Positions 41,252-50,200 of a stretch of 64,000 bases of DNA are shown piece by piece. Under the pieces are notes generated by a model. It ran no database searches. It was not told the DNA's origin and saw nothing but the letters and a program-made list of their open reading frames with translations. Both the position numbers and the translations under genes were made by a program. Origin of the DNA: Phaeosaccion multiseriatum (lineage: Eukaryota; Protista; Ochrophyta, other classes); NCBI GenBank assembly GCA_965112735.1, contig OZ218950.1:6944001-7008000 (forward strand), given 5' to 3'. Position 1 is the first letter of the stretch. Every line of letters begins with the position of its first letter.

Positions 41252-44200
41252 CTTCCCTTCACCCCACCCCTCCACCCCTCCACCCCTCCAACCCAGCCCC
41301 CCTCACTCACTCACTCACTCACTCACTCACCCATCTCGAGTATGTCCCCCTGCTGACTCCCCTCCGCATCCGCCTCCACGTAACACACGTCCCTTCCTTC
41401 GCAGCCCGCTCGAGCCAGCGCCTCCCGCACCACCGTCTGCTGCGTGGCTCCCTGAGGAGGCGAGGGCGGGCGTGTCAAGCGACTCGCTTCGCTCTTGGCA
41501 CCTTTTGAGCTCCGAGACAAGTGTGACATGTCGTCTCCTCCTCCCTTCGATCCCCCACCCGTGCTCGCCGCCCCGGAAACGGACTGTCCCCCACTGTGGC
41601 TCACCGCCGTTGCTCTAACGACGGCAGCGATGGTGTCGCCGTCCCTCCTCGCGTCCGCCAAGCGCTTCAGTACGATGGCACCGCACCCCTCGGCACGAAC
41701 GTATCCGTCGGCCGCGGTGTCGAAAGACTTACAGCGCCCCCCTCCAGTGCCATCGCCTCCCCCCTCCCCTCGCCCGCCATGCTGCTGTCCACCACGCTGC
41801 TGCGAGAGACGCCCCTCCCTCCTCAGCCGCTGAAAGCCCCTCCGGTCCAACAAAAGACTCACCCCCCCCACCACTGCGGCGCTACACTGGCCCAGCACTA
41901 GGGAGGTGGTGGCCGCATCAAGAGCCACCAGCGCAGAGGGCGAGGACGCGTCATCGATGGTCCGAACGGGGCCCGTGAGAGCAAGCGTGTGCGAGATGCG
42001 GCCAGCCAAGCAGGTACCGGGCAAGACGGGGCTGGTGCTGGTAGACGTTACACTAACACCGCCTCCACCAACACTAACACCAGTACCAACACCGGTCAAG
42101 CTGCTGGCGACTGTACCACCAACTGCTGATGATGCTAATGACGGCTCGAGCTCGGGATGTTCACGCCACTCGGAGCCCGACATACCCATGAACAAGCCGA
42201 TGCGCTGCCCCTCCAGTTGCTGCCGTTGTATCACCAACTGCTCCTCCTCCCCCTGCTGCTGCGGTCCCTGGCCGAGGGTGCCCCCTCCCCCCGCGACGCC
42301 CCCCCCTGCGGACGGTTTCTGAGCCCCCTCCTGCCCCTCCTCCTCCCGCCTGGTCCACGGCCAATGCCAAGGATGCTCAGCTTCACCACCATCTCCGCCC
42401 ACACCTCCACCTTCCTCCTCCGACGGTGGCGGCAGCCCCTTCTCCTTCTTCTCGAAGCCCGCATTGTGTAGCACCTCTGTGGCCACCTCGAGCATGATGC
42501 GTTGGTTGGGGTCCATTGATTGGGCCTCGAAGGCTGAGATGCCGAAGAAGGCGTTGTCGAACATGTCTACGTCGTCGATGAAGCCGCCTGCGAGTGAGCA
42601 CATACACGGAAGAGAGCGGGGCAGAGCACGCAAGGAGGGGATGAGGGAGGGGCGGAAGCGGCCTCATTTGATTGGGCGATTTGCGTATGCCATCAGATTC
42701 AGAGGGGGGGGGAGGGAAGGACAAAGGGGTTTGCGTGAATCGAAAGAAACGCACGCACGCACGCACACACGCAACACGCACGCGCCCACACACCTGTCTC
42801 GTCCCCCAGCCCCCTCAGAGGAGGAGCAGTGCCCACGCAATCTCTTCTCGCGCAGAGCGAGTTCCACAGCCTAGAGACGGTGTCGCACCCCCCGGGGTAC
42901 CTGCACGCCACTCCCACCACCGCAACATCCAACTCGTCTCTGTCTCTCTCTCCCTCTCTCTCCACCTCCCTCCCTCTGTCTCTCTCTCCCTCTCTCTCCA
43001 CCTCCCTCCCTCTGTCTCTATCTATCTCTCTGGCTCTGGATCTGTCTGTGTTTCTGGCTCTGATTCTCGCTCGAGGGTCGTTCACCACTCCCTGCGACAG
43101 GCTGTCCAAGAGGGGGGGCGCCTCCATCGCTGGTGATAGAGTACTTGGTGATACAAGATAATTTGGTGATGCGACAGGTGGTGATACCAGAAAGCCGGTC
43201 CCGCGGTGGTCCACGCCTCCTCCTCCCGCTGGGGGCGACGCTTGCCGCGCTCCTTCTCCTTCGTCTCCTCCTTCGTCTTCTGCTTCGGCGTCGGACCACT
43301 TCCCTCCCAATTGGACTCTCCCGCTGCCTGCTGCTCCCGCACCTCCTCCTACCACCCCACTACTGCCGTCCAGCCCTTCTTCAATGCCTCCAAACCTCTC
43401 CTCTTCCAGGAACGCTGCCAGCAGCGCCGGAGTGGGGTAGTTGAAGAGCGCCCCCACATCAACCTCAAACCCAAACTGTGGGTCGGGGCCTTTGCTGCAC
43501 CCGCTGCCGAACGTCCCCACCCCCCCCCTACCAATGCTACCCCCACCTCCCACGCTGCTATTGCCCCCACTCTGACTGTTCCCCAGCGATGCCCCTCCTC
43601 CTCCTCGTCCGCCCGCTCCCTGCCCTGATCTAGTGCTCCCACTGAGGCTGCCAGACCCAAATCCTGTGCCCACCCCTCCTCCTTCATCGTCGCTACCGTC
43701 GTCGTCTCCTCGCCCTAGCCACTCCTCCAAGGCATTTGCCAGTTGTGACACCAGCAGGGGTGTCATGCCTTCCTCGATGAAGTTGTCATTCGGCTTGAGT
43801 TTGAGTTTCAGGACGATCTCTTCTGTCTCTGTCGCCGTGGCGTCTGATTTGGCACGCTGCTGCGGTATCAACAACTGCTGAGCCTGTAGAGCGTCCTGGG
43901 CGAGGGCCAATATCCCGTCTTGGAGTAACGCCACTCTCGCGTGCTTTGGCTTGGATGCGATGAACGACATAGGAAGAGACGTTGCCTGTCCATGGAACCG
44001 CAACGCACCACCACACACACACGTGCACACGCACACACACGTACACGCACATACATACACGCACGCGACAGAGCAGCGTTCTTAGGCATCGATTGACTGA
44101 CCTTGCTAGATCACCAACAGGGGCATAGAAAATGCGAGCAGCCAAGATGGTAACATGGCGCCTCAACATTGCGAACCGGAGTCACAATAAAGTCAGGGCG

Positions 44201-47200
44201 TGATTGCCTTACCTTGATCAGCTCTGCTCTTGTCCCTTCTCCTCCTCCTCCTCCTCCTCCTCGTCCTCGTCGTCGTCCTCCTCCTCCTCCTCCCCCTCCC
44301 CCTCCTCCCCCTCCTCCTCCTCCTCCTCCTCCTCCTCCTCCTCCTCCTCCTCCTCCTCTTCCTCCCCCTCCTCCTCTTCCTCCCCCTCCTCCTCCTCCTC
44401 CCCCCTCTCTCCCACCCCCCATCACCCCACCTCCCTCCTGCTGCTGTATCACCAACTGCTCGCTTCGGTTGCCTGCCTCCACCTTCTGTCTCAATCCCAA
44501 CCCCCCCGAGCCGAGTCGAACATACCCGATCGCTCCGCCCCCAGTCCCTGGCGACCCCAGCCCCTCCGCTCCCGAGCTATAGACCAAGTCGCTGTGAACC
44601 CTTGCCGCGAGTGAGGCCGCGTAGGCCGCAGCGCACTCTGCCTGCGGGGAAGACAGTACCGTTGACCCTACATACAGGCCCCCCATGCCCTGCAACCCTT
44701 CCAGCACGGTGTACACGCCTAAGCGGATGTCTTCGCAGCTAAAGTGGGGGAAGTAAGGCCGCTCCACAAAGTGGGTGAGTCCTTTGAGTGGGGGTTGGAG
44801 GCCCAAGCTTGCCAAGTCCGCCCTGAGACTAGCCTGCGTCATGTTTCCCGTCTCGTCTGCAAAGGCCAGCACCCGTACTGTGCTGCTGCCCATATGCCTC
44901 CGCCTCTTGCCGGGTTGCAGGTGGAGCATACTGCGTCGCCCCTGCTTCTCTACCCCGTCCTGTCCAACAGCCGGGGCCGAAGCCACGCCGTACCAGCCTT
45001 CCTCGACATTATCGAGCTGCTCGACATCGAGGTCTGGCTCGATATCAGGGTCCTCGAGGACGCGACAGGGGATTACTCCCAGTCGCTGCTCCTCCTGCTC
45101 CTGCTTTTGCTCCCCCGGTTGTTGTTCTTCGTTCTCGTCCTCCTCCATCCCTTCCATCTCCTTCTCCCTCTCCTCGCCCTTCTCCTCCTCCCCCTCCCCC
45201 TCCCCCTCCCCCTCCTCCTCCTCCAGCTCGGCCACTGCCCTGGCGGAACTCAGGTACAGCACGCGACGAAAGATGCGACACAAACGAGTCGACACGTCAT
45301 CAGTGCCCTGCAAATAGGCTGCCATCGGAGCGGGATCATGTGCCATGACCACTCTGTCAAAGGCAAGGGTCTCTCCGCTCCTTAGCTTCACTAAACACTT
45401 CCTCCTCCCCGTGGCCCCATCCACTGCCATCCCCCTCTCCTCCGCTGCCGTCCCTTCTTCCTCGGCCCCACCCTCCCCAACAAAACTGCGCTCGTCCTCC
45501 GCATCTTCGTCGATCAGATACTCTGAGTCGTCCTCGTCTTCGTCCACTGCCGTCCCCTTATCCTTAGTATCAAAGACCCAATCTCGGATGTTCCAATCCG
45601 CCCATGCACTGCTGCCCCTACTTCTCCCGCTGCTATCGCTGCGGCCCCTACTCGAGCTTCTCCCCTTCCCTCCCCCACTGCTGTTCGAGCTTGAGCTACG
45701 GCCTCTGCTACCGACACTTGTACCCGTGCTCCTCCCCCTGCTATTGCTCCCGGTACTCCTACCTCTGCTTTGTCCTCTACTCCTCCCTCGGCTATTATTC
45801 CCCCCCCCCCCCGTACCACCGGAACTGCTGCCGCCTAAGCTCCGAACAGCACTCGGCCTTCCTCTGCTGCTGGTGCTGCTGCATATGGTGCTGGCAGCCG
45901 TTGCGAGGGTCGCGCCTGATCCGGAAGAAGCGCCCCCGGCCCCTCCTTTGCCCCCCTTGCCACTGCTACTCAAGGCACTGCTGGTGTTGCTCAACGTTGG
46001 CCTCGCAGGTATAGGGCTGGGTGCTGATCCTCCGCCGCGCGGCAACACACTCACTACTTCGCTGTTGAGCCTACAGTCCAACAGGCTGGCAGCGACACTC
46101 TCCCACAGCGCCGAAAAGCCGCCCTCTATCTTGGAGCGTGTTTCCGTGCAGCCAATGCTCGACACAAACTGTGGGCGTGCGAGGTTGGGTAGGAAGGTTG
46201 GGTAGGAAGGTTGAGTAGGCATGGTTGGGTGGGCAGGGTTGGGTATCAAGATTGGGTCGTGAGTAGGCAAGGTTGAGCATCGAAGGCACTATAGAGCAAA
46301 AGCAAGCGCGCAGCGAGCAGTTTCGGTCCCTTCCTCATCCCAACCCCCCCCCCCCCCCCTTTTTTTCTCTCCTCCTGCTCCTACTGGACCGATTTGACTC
46401 ACCCCGATCAAACCCCTCCCCGCCACTCCTCCACCTCAATCCCTGCCCATATGCCTCTTCCTCTCTCTCTCAACACACACACACACTGTTTCTCTCCTTT
46501 CTCTCCTCTCCCTCTTTCCTCTCCCCCTCTTCCCCTCCCCTCCCGCCTCTCCGTCCCTCCGTCCCTCCCTCCCCCCCTCGCCCTCACCTTGCGCAAGTAC
46601 GTCATGGGCAAATCTTGGCAGATCAGGCCGTAACCCGCTGCTGCGAATTGCGGCCCCATTACAGGCTCAAAGTAATGCTGCGTCCACTCGTCCTGCTGTG
46701 ACAGCCAGGTCCGAACAGTAAGACACCTCCCGCCCCCCACGCCTCCCACCGTGTCCGAAGGGGCCCCCTTGCCGATGGAGGCCATAATCTTGCGGGTCAA
46801 CCGCGCGAGTGCGATTTGGGACTCTCGTTGTTGCTGCATCACCGACTGCTGCTGCTGCTGCTGTTGCTGCTGCTCGCCAGTCGTCCCCCCGGCGATTGGA
46901 GCAGGAGCAGTACCAGCACTACTATGAACAGGAGCAGCAGCACCATCGACCTGCTCGCTCTTATCGTGTGGAATTTGGTGATACACAGTGGCGTGGTCTG
47001 GCACAAGGTCGTGTCCGAACCTCTCCGCCAAGGCCTTGATGTGCACGGACCGGTCGGGGAACACGGCGTGGCCGCCCAGAGGTAGCGGTACCGGAAGCGC
47101 AGCCTTCTCCTTCCCCTCGTCCTCCTTGTCTCCGCCCCCATCAGCAGCAGCAGCCGAGTACTCGGCCGAGGACGCACCGCCCACAAAGCCCCTCCTCTCG

Positions 47201-50200
47201 AGCAGCGTGACTTTATGGCCTCTGTCTTGGAGGTGCAGAGCCACATTGAGCCCGCTCGCCCCGGCCCCGATCACACACACATGCTGCGGTGGATGCTGCA
47301 TCGCCCCCTCCTCCTCCTGCTGTACAAACTGCTGCTGCTGCCGCCGCTGCTGCTGCAAACGATGCGGCGGCGTCATGTGCTGAAGATGCGGCGGCGACAA
47401 CTGATACTGCTGCTGCTGCTGCTGCTGGCGCTGAATCACCAACTGCTGCTGCTGTCGTCGCCACTCCTCCTCCTCCTGCTGCAGCCGCTCCCGCCTCCCT
47501 CGCACCTGCGCCTCTGCTTGCTTCCTGCGGTTCACAATCATCTTCATGCGCTCATCGGCGGTCATCTCCTCCGCCATCGGAGACAGGTGTCGTCGCATCC
47601 TGTGGCCCGAAGTACCACCTCCACCCTCGCCCCTCGCAGTGGCTGAAATCGGCTTGTGTTCTCTTCCACCTGTCCTCCTCTCGGGTCGGTTGCCTAGTCG
47701 TTGCTGCTGGGGGGGTGGTGACTGCTGCAGTCGCTGTTGCTGAGGCAGCGACAAGTGCTGCACCTGCGCCTGGTGCTCCTGCTTCTGCTCCTCCTGCTGC
47801 TGCTGCTGCCGCTGCCGCTGCTTCTGCTGCTGTTTCTGCTCCTGAGGCTCCTCCTCCGCTGGAACTACTCGTTCTATCTCTCCTCCTCCCCCTCTCCCTC
47901 CTCCTCCCCCTCGTCGTCTTCGTCCTCCTGCTGCTGCTGCTGCTCCTCTTCTCTGCCTTGTCTCCAAAGCCCCACCCCCTCCACCTTCCCTCCCGGTGGG
48001 GGGTATCTGCCGTGCCGGCTCTTCCGTTGGGAAGCTCCACACAACATCCTCCCGGTGCTCCCCGCCCCTGCCCCCCTTGCTGCTGCCCACTCCCCCCCCC
48101 TGTCCGCTGCCATCCCCGCCTCCGGACCCCTCACTGCTTGTGGCGAGAGAGCTCCGAGTCGGGGTGGGACCGCTGCGCGAAGGAGGAACCTCCATCTCGT
48201 TCTCTTTGGTTTGAAGCGCATCCCTCCGTGCAAGTCGCACTGCTCTCTGTTCGCCTGCGTCTGCGCCTCCACCTCCACCTCGTACCACCGTCCTGTTGCT
48301 TCCTCGCACTACTCCCACCACCTCCCCCTCCTCCTCCTCCTCCTCCTCCTCCTCCACCACCACCACCACCACCTTCTCCTTGCTCTTCCTCTCCTTCTTT
48401 TTCTTCTTTTTGTCCTTCTTCCTCTTCTTTCCCTTCCTCTCCCCTCCCAACAAAATTGAGGACGACAAACTAGTAGTAGTCAGCGACCGCTCCCCCTCCC
48501 CCTCCCCACTCCCCTCCCCCGTCCTCCTCCACATCTCGCTCAAAATCTGCAAACCGTCACTGTGAAGCGCGTCCCTTGTCGCCCTTCGTCGCAGCTGACC
48601 GCTGTCCGTCCTAGGTATGCTCCCTGCCTTGACCACCGCTACCCTGCTCCCCTTCACTCCGCTCACCGTTCCCATGATAACTTCCTGAGCTAACTCCGCC
48701 ACCCCCTCGGCCTCGGCCTCTGCCTCGGCCTCCTCGCCGTCGCCTTCTGCCCCCCCCGACTCAGAAACCAACTCCAGCACCACCTCCAGCACGCCGTCGC
48801 TGCCGTCTTCCAGCGAGGAGAAGGCCGCGATACTCCCATGCCCGTGCCTTGTCACAGATGGCAGCGCCTTCAGCAGGGCGAACTCAATGTCCTGAGGGTA
48901 GTGACACACTCCCCGCAGAGCGATAAGGTCCATGATACGACCGCACACGAACAGCTCACCCCCCTCGAAAAACCCAACGTCGCCAGTGCGCAGGTACACA
49001 CGGCTGTCGGCTGCTCCCCTTCCCAACCCTCCTCCTCCTCCTCCTCCTCCTCCTCCTCCTCCCTCCAGCCGCGCCCGGAACACTTGGTCTGACAAGGTGG
49101 GGTTGTTCCAATACCCCGCTCCCACTGACGCGGAGGAGATCCAAATCTCGCCCTCTTCCGTGCCATTGCCATCGGCGACCATCCTCACTTCCCTCCTGGA
49201 CGCAGGGTTGACGATCTTGATGTCCATGAAGCCTGCAGACAGCTCCGGACGGCCTACGCTGAGGAGATCGGGTCTTTGCTTGGATCGGTGCAGAGAGTCT
49301 GTCCGGCAGCCTGAGGAGAGGGGAGAGGGGAGAGGGGAAAGAGAGGGGCATTGGAGGCATTGAAGGCACTGGTTGAGTGAGTGATTGATTGATTCAGCAT
49401 GCGTATTTAGTTATGAGTAGCAGTTAGCGAACACAGTAGCAGCAGTTGGTGACACAGCCGCAGCAGGAGGCTTGATCTTGCTAGTGCCCGGTTTCAGTGC
49501 AGTGTCCCTTTCAATGACCCACACACTCACCCAACGCGACGTGCTCCGATAACACGTAGCCTCCTCCAAACCACCTTCGCAGAGCAGAGTGGAGGGTTGG
49601 TGATACAGAGCAGAGCAGAGTAGGGTCACAGAGGAGGGGGGAGGAAGCAAGAGCAGTGAGCACTGATGGTGTAGTGGGTGGACGAGTTGTGGCTCTGCAC
49701 CCAAGCTCACAAGAGACAGAGAGAGAGGGAGAGAGAAAGACAGAGAGGCGGGGGGGGAGAAGAGAGAGAGACAGAGAGAGAGAGCAACAGCGAGAGCGGT
49801 AGACGGAGGGAGAGGGACGCGAGAAATGGCCACACTCCTTCCCTTCCCCCCCCGGACTTGGCGTGTAGTGTACAGTACGTACCTCTCAGGCAGGCCACAA
49901 GGCTCAAAGGCCTCTCCAAAGCGCTCCACCGTCTCCAGGCGAGTGCGCTCGGTGGCGCTCTGCAGACACACCACACACGACAGGTCGAGAGAGAGTAGCA
50001 GCGCCGCCGTGCCTGAGGCCAGGTTTCCGCGCTGGGAGGCCATGTCCACCTGTGTGTCAGTATCAGTTTCAGTTTCAGTTGATTAGATTATGCTTCTGAA
50101 GCGAACTGAACCGAACGATTATCCAAACGCAAGCGAGTGGATGATTGTCAAGCAAGAGGTGTTAAAAGTCGGTGTAAAATAGACTAATCGACACTTCTGT

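Follow-up and report, generated by a model that had tools for sequence, protein, structure and literature searches.

A flavin domain of the polyunsaturated fatty-acid isomerase family in a probably disabled duplicate of an algal megasynthase gene

We analysed a window of 64,000 nucleotides from the alga Phaeosaccion multiseriatum (contig OZ218950.1, positions 6,944,001 to 7,008,000), which contains an intron-split megasynthase gene with the domain order FAAL - PAI-like - carrier - KS - carrier - Pls-type membrane end. The PAI-like domain, named for the polyunsaturated fatty acid (PUFA) isomerase of Cutibacterium acnes (PAI, PDB 2B9W), an FAD enzyme that forms conjugated linoleic acid by turning methylene-interrupted into conjugated double bonds, is a flavin domain that translation of the window places in two minus-strand exons (47,295-46,588 and 46,168-44,590). 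Family enzymes are proteins of about 420-490 aa; this domain does not stand alone and is embedded between the FAAL and a carrier in one gene. A cleaner counterpart lies on contig 10 of the same genome (G000:C10, approximately 2,594,000-2,604,000; L009); the window gene is its duplicate and evolves fast. The two agree in their FAAL - PAI-like - carrier - KS arrangement and in where an intron interrupts the flavin domain. The features that bear on the argument are, in order of the reading direction:

48595..48615, minus strand: FAAL A10 motif PRTDSGQ, in which the Lys of the duplicate (PKTTSGK) is replaced by Gln
47300..48590, minus strand: Lys/Glu/Gly/Gln low complexity, about 430 codons, open in frame, from the FAAL C-terminal end to the Rossmann motif
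46588..47295, minus strand: flavin domain exon part 1, with Rossmann beta-alpha-beta, helical substrate region and GYG..DLP..Y
47251-47268, minus strand: GAGASG, from the translation
47176-47199, minus strand: ERRGFVGG (within LLERRGFVGG), from the translation
46597-46635, minus strand: GYG..DLP..Y motif, GYGLICQDLPMTY, from the translation
46169..46587, minus strand: GT-AG intron of 419 nt within the flavin domain, after ...TYLRK (AAG/GTGAGG ... CACAG/TTT)
44590..46168, minus strand: flavin domain exon part 2, four ordered blocks and a last helix, from the PAI-family HMM and BLASTP to the duplicate
46082-46168, minus strand: block FVSSIG..GGFSALWESVAASL, exon part 2
45422..46027, minus strand: insert 1, missing from the duplicate, a low-complexity run of about 200 codons that is Ser/Gly/Arg-rich at first and acidic thereafter
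45332-45406, minus strand: block RRKCLVKL..FDRVVMAHDP, exon part 2
45086..45217, minus strand: insert 2, a Glu-rich run of 44 codons that the duplicate lacks
44687-44755, minus strand: YFPH..LEGLQG, YFPHFSCEDIRLGVYTVLEGLQG, from the translation
44648-44683, minus strand: C-terminal FAD-domain block GGLYVGSTVLSS, exon part 2
reaching about 44597, minus strand: last helix, exon part 2
43758..43781, minus strand: first carrier domain, GMTP where the duplicate has GMSS, phosphopantetheine Ser replaced by Pro
41929..41961, minus strand: KS active-site motif DDASSPSAL where the duplicate has DAACPSAL, Cys replaced by Ser
41359..41382, minus strand: KS motif YVEADAEG where the duplicate has YVEAHATG, His replaced by Asp

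The original prediction had quoted four motifs for the flavin domain (GAGASG, ERRGFVGG, GYG..DLP..Y and YFPH..LEGLQG), and all four were read at the claimed site in the minus-strand translation. The FAD dinucleotide-binding signature is complete, comprising GxGxxG (GAGASG), an acidic end of beta-2 (LLERR) and a GG motif (VGG), and alignment finds in the window copy all the GYG and Y-F-P-H ... Q-G hallmarks, which 81-100% of PAI-family members carry. The helical substrate region of the first exon bears a poly-Gln insert. Both flanks of the 419-nt intron are whole codons, its codon position is common to the window copy and the duplicate, and the junction across it gives a 19-residue spacing equal to that in the duplicate and in P0001, a eukaryote-like metagenome gene (L091). 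The homology blocks of the window gene are free of stops and frameshifts, with one frame per exon throughout. The only sequencing runs containing this stretch, four in number, are genomic contigs reading straight through the intron, and the apparent 'joints' in them are repeat artefacts.

Sequence comparisons support assignment of the domain, analysed exon by exon, to the PAI family. The C-terminal piece has PAI (2b9w) as its sole PDB match, both alone (E 0.003) and as a 4-row profile (E 5e-12), and a family profile of the relatives matches PAI at E 3e-69 (237 bits) versus E 1e-17 (67 bits) for amine oxidases. A PAI-family HMM built from 27 proteins matches the N exon at 49.8 bits (E 5e-17, HMM positions 8-191) and the C exon at 57.9 bits (E 2e-19), the latter at positions 211-239, 246-281 and 350-433 in family order; the middle part (HMM 282-349) is alignable solely via the contig-10 duplicate. 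Pfam matches to the N exon (DAO, NAD_binding_8 and Amino_oxidase) are limited to the Rossmann part. Searched against the PDB, alone or profiled with the duplicate, this exon returned generic Rossmann matches only, with PAI absent from the best 60; an exhaustive search with it gave weak matches, mostly to the Rossmann motif, the best being P0001 at 45.8 bits. Folded alone, it reached a pLDDT of 66 and matched only Rossmann fragments of 31-46 residues. The C block had no match in a word-indexed search, no PAI-specific model was found in NCBIfam, and an ESM Atlas search gave superfamily-level leads only. The model of the second flavin domain of P0001, a contiguous domain, has 2b9w as its best structural match (E 2e-26, TM 0.82), with CpaO and amine oxidases ranking behind it. 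The description of the domain as PAI-like is thus upheld by sequence profiles and by the fold of its nearest contiguous relative.

Flavin amine oxidases and protoporphyrinogen oxidase (PF01593) were considered and rejected, as the profile is matched at no more than positions 2-98 of 443 (27.1 bits), with no match from the C exon. These enzymes share the superfamily and the N-terminal FAD motif with the window domain, but the match is confined to its first ~115 residues, and the family profile scores them 170 bits below PAI. PAI and the window domain agree in their FAD Rossmann motif, in the order of blocks and in both hallmarks (GYG and YFPH..QG). However, PAI works on free fatty acids as a separate enzyme of 424 aa, whereas the window domain forms part of a megasynthase, is interrupted by an intron and contains ~250 additional low-complexity residues. 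To our knowledge, no flavin-dependent double-bond isomerase of fatty acids other than PAI has been characterised structurally. A red-algal polyenoic fatty acid isomerase, PFI, has been cloned from Ptilota filicina (PMC7700177).

The flavin domains of the window gene and of the contig-10 duplicate are 45% identical at aligned positions, and BLASTP of the C exon against the duplicate returns three ordered blocks (E 4e-27, 1e-15 and 9e-15). The earlier claim that the other modules are inactive is borne out by the loss of the FAAL Lys (to Gln), the carrier Ser (to Pro), the KS Cys (to Ser) and the KS His (to Asp), all four of which the duplicate keeps. It had also been proposed that the flavin domain may still isomerise free PUFA as the sole working module, with the dead domains serving as an anchor or delivery scaffold. 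The intact FAD motifs and family hallmarks beside a FAAL, carrier and KS stripped of key residues speak for this proposal, as do the long unbroken reading frames. With the P0001 gene as outgroup, the window's excess of changes, 58:23 in the FAAL, is also lower for the flavin domain (38:30 and 46:27), although the difference is not significant.

Several observations weigh against continued activity. First, the window copy matches 33 of 73 family-conserved columns where the duplicate matches 44 of 73; about 10 conserved residues kept by the duplicate are lost in the window copy alone, among them F416, invariant in the PAI family. Second, the window flavin branch is approximately three times longer in a tree of the N half, and PAI-family HMM scores fall from 84.1 bits in the duplicate to 49.8 in the window copy for the N half (about 60%) and from 134.6 to 57.9 for the C half (less than half). 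Third, the flavin domain is conserved relative to the duplicate no better than the dead domains are. Finally, the window copy carries large low-complexity inserts, of which the duplicate is almost free. Insert 1, which could be in part an unrecognised intron, maps, in the model of the P0001 domain, to hairpin loop 231-240, and insert 2, around which hexamer and triplet repeats occur (45134-45224), maps to loop 299-308; between the FAAL and the Rossmann motif, the duplicate has an intron and a ~35-aa linker in place of ~430 codons. Together with the Val at the position of the PAI residue Arg88, discussed below, these differences make a still-active free-PUFA isomerase a very unlikely account of the domain.

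A second explanation is that the gene in its entirety is a relic, either decaying or without any catalytic role, its flavin domain as inert as the neighbours and its intact-looking motifs simply not yet hit. The window copy belongs to a family of more than 20 FAAL-headed genes, among which it is the outlier (58-63% identity to the contig-10 gene, against 71-93% for the others), every one of its domains has lost conserved residues, and it is heavily invaded by triplet-repeat low complexity. No orthologue was found among 1.84 billion representatives or in a metagenome scan, which returned only five stand-alone bacterial PAI-like genes. Against this explanation, the homology blocks remain open, the splice sites are canonical and conserved, and fold-level similarity persists across all domains; a translated protein therefore fits better than a dead gene, and we consider a relic unlikely. 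Because the FAD-binding motifs and family hallmarks remain, the window domain may retain binding of FAD and of a lipid chain, while turnover by this copy is rather improbable.

The relatives of the domain bear on its ancestral substrate. In the N-half tree, the window copy and the duplicate are sisters (99/96) and are joined by P0001 (95/85), and these group at weak support (83/61) with bacterial fusions of a PAI-like domain to a carrier; in every member of this group a carrier domain adjoins the flavin domain. P0001, the nearest relative outside this genome, consists of FAAL exons, two PAI-like domains, three carriers and a Pls-type end. It resembles the window gene in its FAAL head, its Pls-type membrane end and the lack of Arg at the Arg88 equivalent, and differs in having two tandem flavin domains and no KS. 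The bacterial genes (P0034, P0059, L011) encode allene oxide synthase - PAI-like - carrier fusions in which, as in the window, the carrier directly follows the PAI-like domain and the Phe168 equivalent is a small residue; unlike the window gene, they have a catalase-related allene oxide synthase head in place of the FAAL, lack the KS and Pls-type end, and carry Arg at the Arg88 equivalent. We found no mention of FAAL- or carrier-fused PAI domains in assembly lines in the searchable literature.

The roles of two substrate-site residues of PAI, Arg88 and Phe168, were reportedly described in 2006, and we take Arg88 to be the residue that binds the free carboxylate. The equivalent position is Arg in 20 of the 27 family members and Val in both the window copy, where it was placed via pairwise alignment to the duplicate, and the duplicate itself. 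The Phe168 equivalent, which precedes GYG, is likewise Phe in 20 of 27, Ala in the window copy and the duplicate, and a small residue in all carrier-linked forms. Neither of the PAI residues whose check had been proposed is thus present in the window copy, and the Val in both algal copies, with a clade whose members are all carrier-fused, counts against the original prediction of a domain acting on free PUFA. Loss of the Arg is no clean mark of tethered substrates, since the bacterial carrier fusions retain it. Because the algal copies group with carrier-linked relatives, the ancestral substrate is more likely to have been a tethered acyl chain than free PUFA.

That the carrier-linked clade departs from PAI at both the Arg88 and the Phe168 equivalents could also indicate that these domains, the window's included, are oxidases or desaturases rather than redox-neutral isomerases, an idea that overlaps the other explanations. 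CpaO, an FAD oxidase whose own nearest structural relative is PAI (PMC13003489), is the second-best structural match of the P0001 domain 2 model. However, PAI is the only characterised close relative, at 237 bits versus 67 for any oxidase, and the bacterial fusions adjoin oxylipin-type enzymes (allene oxide synthase and patatin), a setting consistent with PUFA chains being rearranged. We regard oxidation or desaturation as quite unlikely.

We favour the view, at a probability of roughly 0.6, that the window holds a PAI-family domain in a disabled duplicate of a FAAL-PAI-carrier-KS-carrier-Pls gene, the intact type of which acts on a tethered chain. In that intact type, the FAAL would charge the neighbouring carrier with an unsaturated fatty acid, and the PAI-like domain, judging from domain order alone, would act in cis on the tethered chain. 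Double bonds would most likely be moved as PAI moves them, with a hydride passed transiently to FAD; one KS step would follow, and the chain would finally be released at the membrane. In the window copy, both loading and condensation would be disabled, so that its flavin domain would be left without in-cis substrate supply.

A more speculative extension, which we think unlikely, is that carrier-fused PAI domains form a distinct, unstudied clade that rearranges the double bonds of tethered PUFA, and that the window gene is a translated 'pseudo-megasynthase' whose working flavin or lipid-binding domain has been recruited to another task, for example to sense or pass on the chains that the active duplicate makes. 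Such a clade would comprise the algal FAAL-PAI-carrier-KS-Pls genes and the bacterial allene oxide synthase-PAI-carrier genes.

Because its activity is doubtful, the window copy is the weaker candidate of the two genes. With one gene in which the catalytic residues are intact and one in which they are disabled, the alga offers a natural comparison. If true, a carrier-dependent relative of PAI within an assembly line would represent a new route to conjugated or rearranged polyunsaturated chains.

The assembly around the window (G000:C1:6,944,001-7,008,000) comprises 67 Mb in 22 contigs, and the minus strand from ~51.7 kb to 33.8 kb carries a single intron-split gene with much triplet-repeat low complexity. 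Its domain order is AMP-binding/fatty-acyl-AMP ligase (FAAL), flavin Rossmann, carrier (PP-binding), ketosynthase (KS), and a Pls/PosA-type end (TIGR02353 matches, E 1e-10 and 1e-5). The four motifs quoted for the flavin domain in the original prediction are all present in the minus-strand translation, in two exon parts.

Motifs and exon boundaries of the window flavin domain
47251-47268, minus strand: GAGASG motif
47176-47199, minus strand: ERRGFVGG motif
46597-46635, minus strand: GYGLICQDLPMTY (GYG..DLP..Y motif)
46588, minus strand: end of first exon part, AAG/GTGAGG
46587-46169, minus strand: 419-nt intron, whole codons on both flanks
46168, minus strand: start of second exon part, CACAG/TTT
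44687-44755, minus strand: YFPHFSCEDIRLGVYTVLEGLQG (YFPH..LEGLQG motif)

A duplicate gene on contig 10 of the same genome carries the intron at the identical codon, and the conserved Lys/Arg and the GG(F/Y) block lie 19 residues apart after splicing in the window, the duplicate, and P0001, a eukaryote-like metagenome gene with two PAI-like domains. All four sequencing runs that cover the stretch consist of genomic contigs, come from one sample, and read through the intron unskipped; their joints are repeat artefacts. Upstream, ~430 in-frame Lys/Glu/Gly/Gln low-complexity codons (47300-48590, minus strand) separate FAAL from flavin domain; in the duplicate this interval is taken up by an intron plus a short linker, and part of the window segment may be an unrecognised intron. 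A (CCT)x55 microsatellite (44235-44401) encodes a long poly-Gly run immediately behind the flavin domain, and many further in-frame CTG, CCT, and CTC arrays lie within 44.1-49.3 kb.

Assignment of the flavin domain to the family of the Cutibacterium acnes polyunsaturated fatty-acid (PUFA) isomerase (PAI) is sound, and its predicted PAI-like nature is borne out by PDB matches, family profile, HMM, and a relative's model. The window exons were searched and folded separately. The C-terminal piece alone has PAI (2b9w) as its sole PDB match (E 0.003, PAI residues 339-420), as does a four-row profile with the window as first row (E 5e-12). Our own HMM, built from 27 PAI-family members, scores 49.8 bits on the N exon (positions 8-191) and 57.9 bits on the C exon (positions 211-239, 246-281, and 350-433), while the Pfam Amino_oxidase model gives 27 bits over only the first ~115 residues of the domain and no match to the C exon. 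Exhaustive searching with the N exon returned weak matches only, the top one, P0001, being confirmed as a true relative; neither this search nor a metagenome scan found an orthologue of the window gene. When both P0001 flavin domains were profiled together with two bacterial fusions and a stand-alone protein (five rows), the match to PAI extended over its full length (E 3e-69, 237 bits); amine oxidases came next (1e-17). Amine oxidases are likewise not the best structural match at family level: the AlphaFold model of P0001 domain 2 (pLDDT 80) finds 2b9w first in Foldseek (E 2e-26, TM 0.82), followed by CpaO (0.79) and amine oxidases (≤0.74). PAI is the nearest structural relative of CpaO (PMC13003489). 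The window N exon folded by itself (pLDDT 66) matches only Rossmann fragments.

The duplicate is arranged in the same way (FAAL, PAI-like, carrier, KS), is nearly free of low complexity, and keeps the canonical residues that the window has replaced.

Canonical sites in the duplicate and the window
48595-48615: FAAL A10 Lys, PKTTSGK in the duplicate, PRTDSGQ in the window
43758-43781: carrier Ser, GMSS in the duplicate, GMTP in the window
41929-41961: KS Cys, DAACPSAL in the duplicate, DDASSPSAL in the window
41359-41382: KS His, YVEAHATG in the duplicate, YVEADAEG in the window

Because all four residues are changed, the FAAL, carrier, and KS modules of the window gene are disabled, as the original prediction had presumed. 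Its proposal that the flavin domain may be the only active module is therefore plausible in its negative half; the positive half, that this domain is active, is unproven. In the duplicate itself (L009:5220-5260, minus strand), ASG replaces the family-invariant GG motif after beta-2, which the window copy keeps.

Judged by its sequence, the window flavin domain is spared only in part, with FAD motifs and hallmarks kept and conserved residues lost. At least 80% of the family share the residue at 73 columns; the window agrees at 33 of these and the duplicate at 44. Window-specific losses include Y68S, L151R, D184C, D277Q, A391R, and F416S, the last at a family-invariant Phe, and pairwise alignment to the duplicate indicates that Y294 is probably lost as well. 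The family HMM gives the duplicate 84.1 + 134.6 bits vs 49.8 + 57.9 for the window. The N-half maximum-likelihood tree pairs window and duplicate as sister sequences (99/96), the window on an end branch of 1.32 and flagged for unusual composition, the duplicate on one of 0.44. In a Tajima-type comparison with the family consensus, changes number 29 in the window and 11 in the duplicate (chi-square 8.1); with P0001 as reference the imbalance is milder (38:30 and 46:27), and for FAAL, with the P0001 gene as outgroup, it is 58:23. The flavin domain is thus worn at most as much as FAAL and possibly less, a difference that is not significant; window-duplicate identity is alike for the FAAL, flavin, and KS blocks. 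The window domain also carries four inserts without counterpart in the duplicate.

Inserts in the window flavin domain
45422-46027, minus strand: ~200 codons, Ser/Gly/Arg-rich and acidic
45086-45217, minus strand: 44 Glu-rich codons
Poly-Gln stretch
13 residues in the first hairpin

On the P0001 model, all four map to loops or to helical regions of low confidence, and they need not disrupt the fold.

The weakest part of the original prediction is its free-PUFA substrate. In the PAI structure paper, the free carboxylate is reportedly bound by Arg88 at the channel mouth. This column holds Arg in 20/27 family members, Val in the duplicate and (by pairwise alignment) the window, and Glu or Ala in P0001. 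The residue preceding GYG (PAI Phe168) is Phe in 20/27 members and Ala, Val, or Cys in all carrier-linked forms. Window and duplicate join P0001 in the N-half tree (95/85), then weakly the bacterial fusions P0034, P0059, and L011 (83/61), and in every one of them a carrier directly follows the flavin domain. This carrier-linked clade and the two column patterns favour, as far as domain order can indicate, a tethered acyl chain rather than free PUFA as ancestral substrate, although the bacterial fusions, unlike window and duplicate, still have Arg at the Arg88 column.

The P0001 gene (L091:789-10592, on a eukaryote-like JGI metagenome contig), the closest outside relative of the window flavin domain, has upstream FAAL exons, two tandem PAI-like domains, three carriers, and a Pls-type hexapeptide/membrane end but, unlike the window gene, no KS. 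In the bacterial proteins (P0034, P0059, L092:8001-11507, and L011:2-2563; ~1,165 aa), a catalase-related allene oxide synthase head (PDB 1u5u, E 8.5e-35) is followed by ~270 uncharacterised residues, a PAI-like domain, and a carrier. The P0034 gene adjoins a patatin/cNMP phospholipase and a thioesterase, a neighbourhood that, from its gene content, looks like a carrier-dependent oxylipin cluster.

Within the alga's own genome, a PAI-like domain inside a megasynthase was found only in the window and contig-10 genes. More than 20 FAAL-headed megasynthase loci (among them C2:962968, C2:277615, C4:636313, and C6:675793) share 71-93% identity with the contig-10 FAAL, and either recent expansion or gene conversion may lie behind this similarity. 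An outlier is the window FAAL (58-63%), as is its KS; a second divergent gene lies near C4:3.53 Mb (C4:3529927-3536204). Contig 7 holds stand-alone PAI-family genes at C7:477836-481162 (L004) and C7:486550-489765 (L005); L004 has one 541-aa open frame (135 bits against the family HMM) and also contains, on the opposite strand, a second, inverted copy of the 3' portion of the gene.

A PAI-type domain within carrier-dependent assembly lines appears to be undescribed in the searchable literature, and the intact contig-10 gene, rather than the window copy, is the better object for its study.
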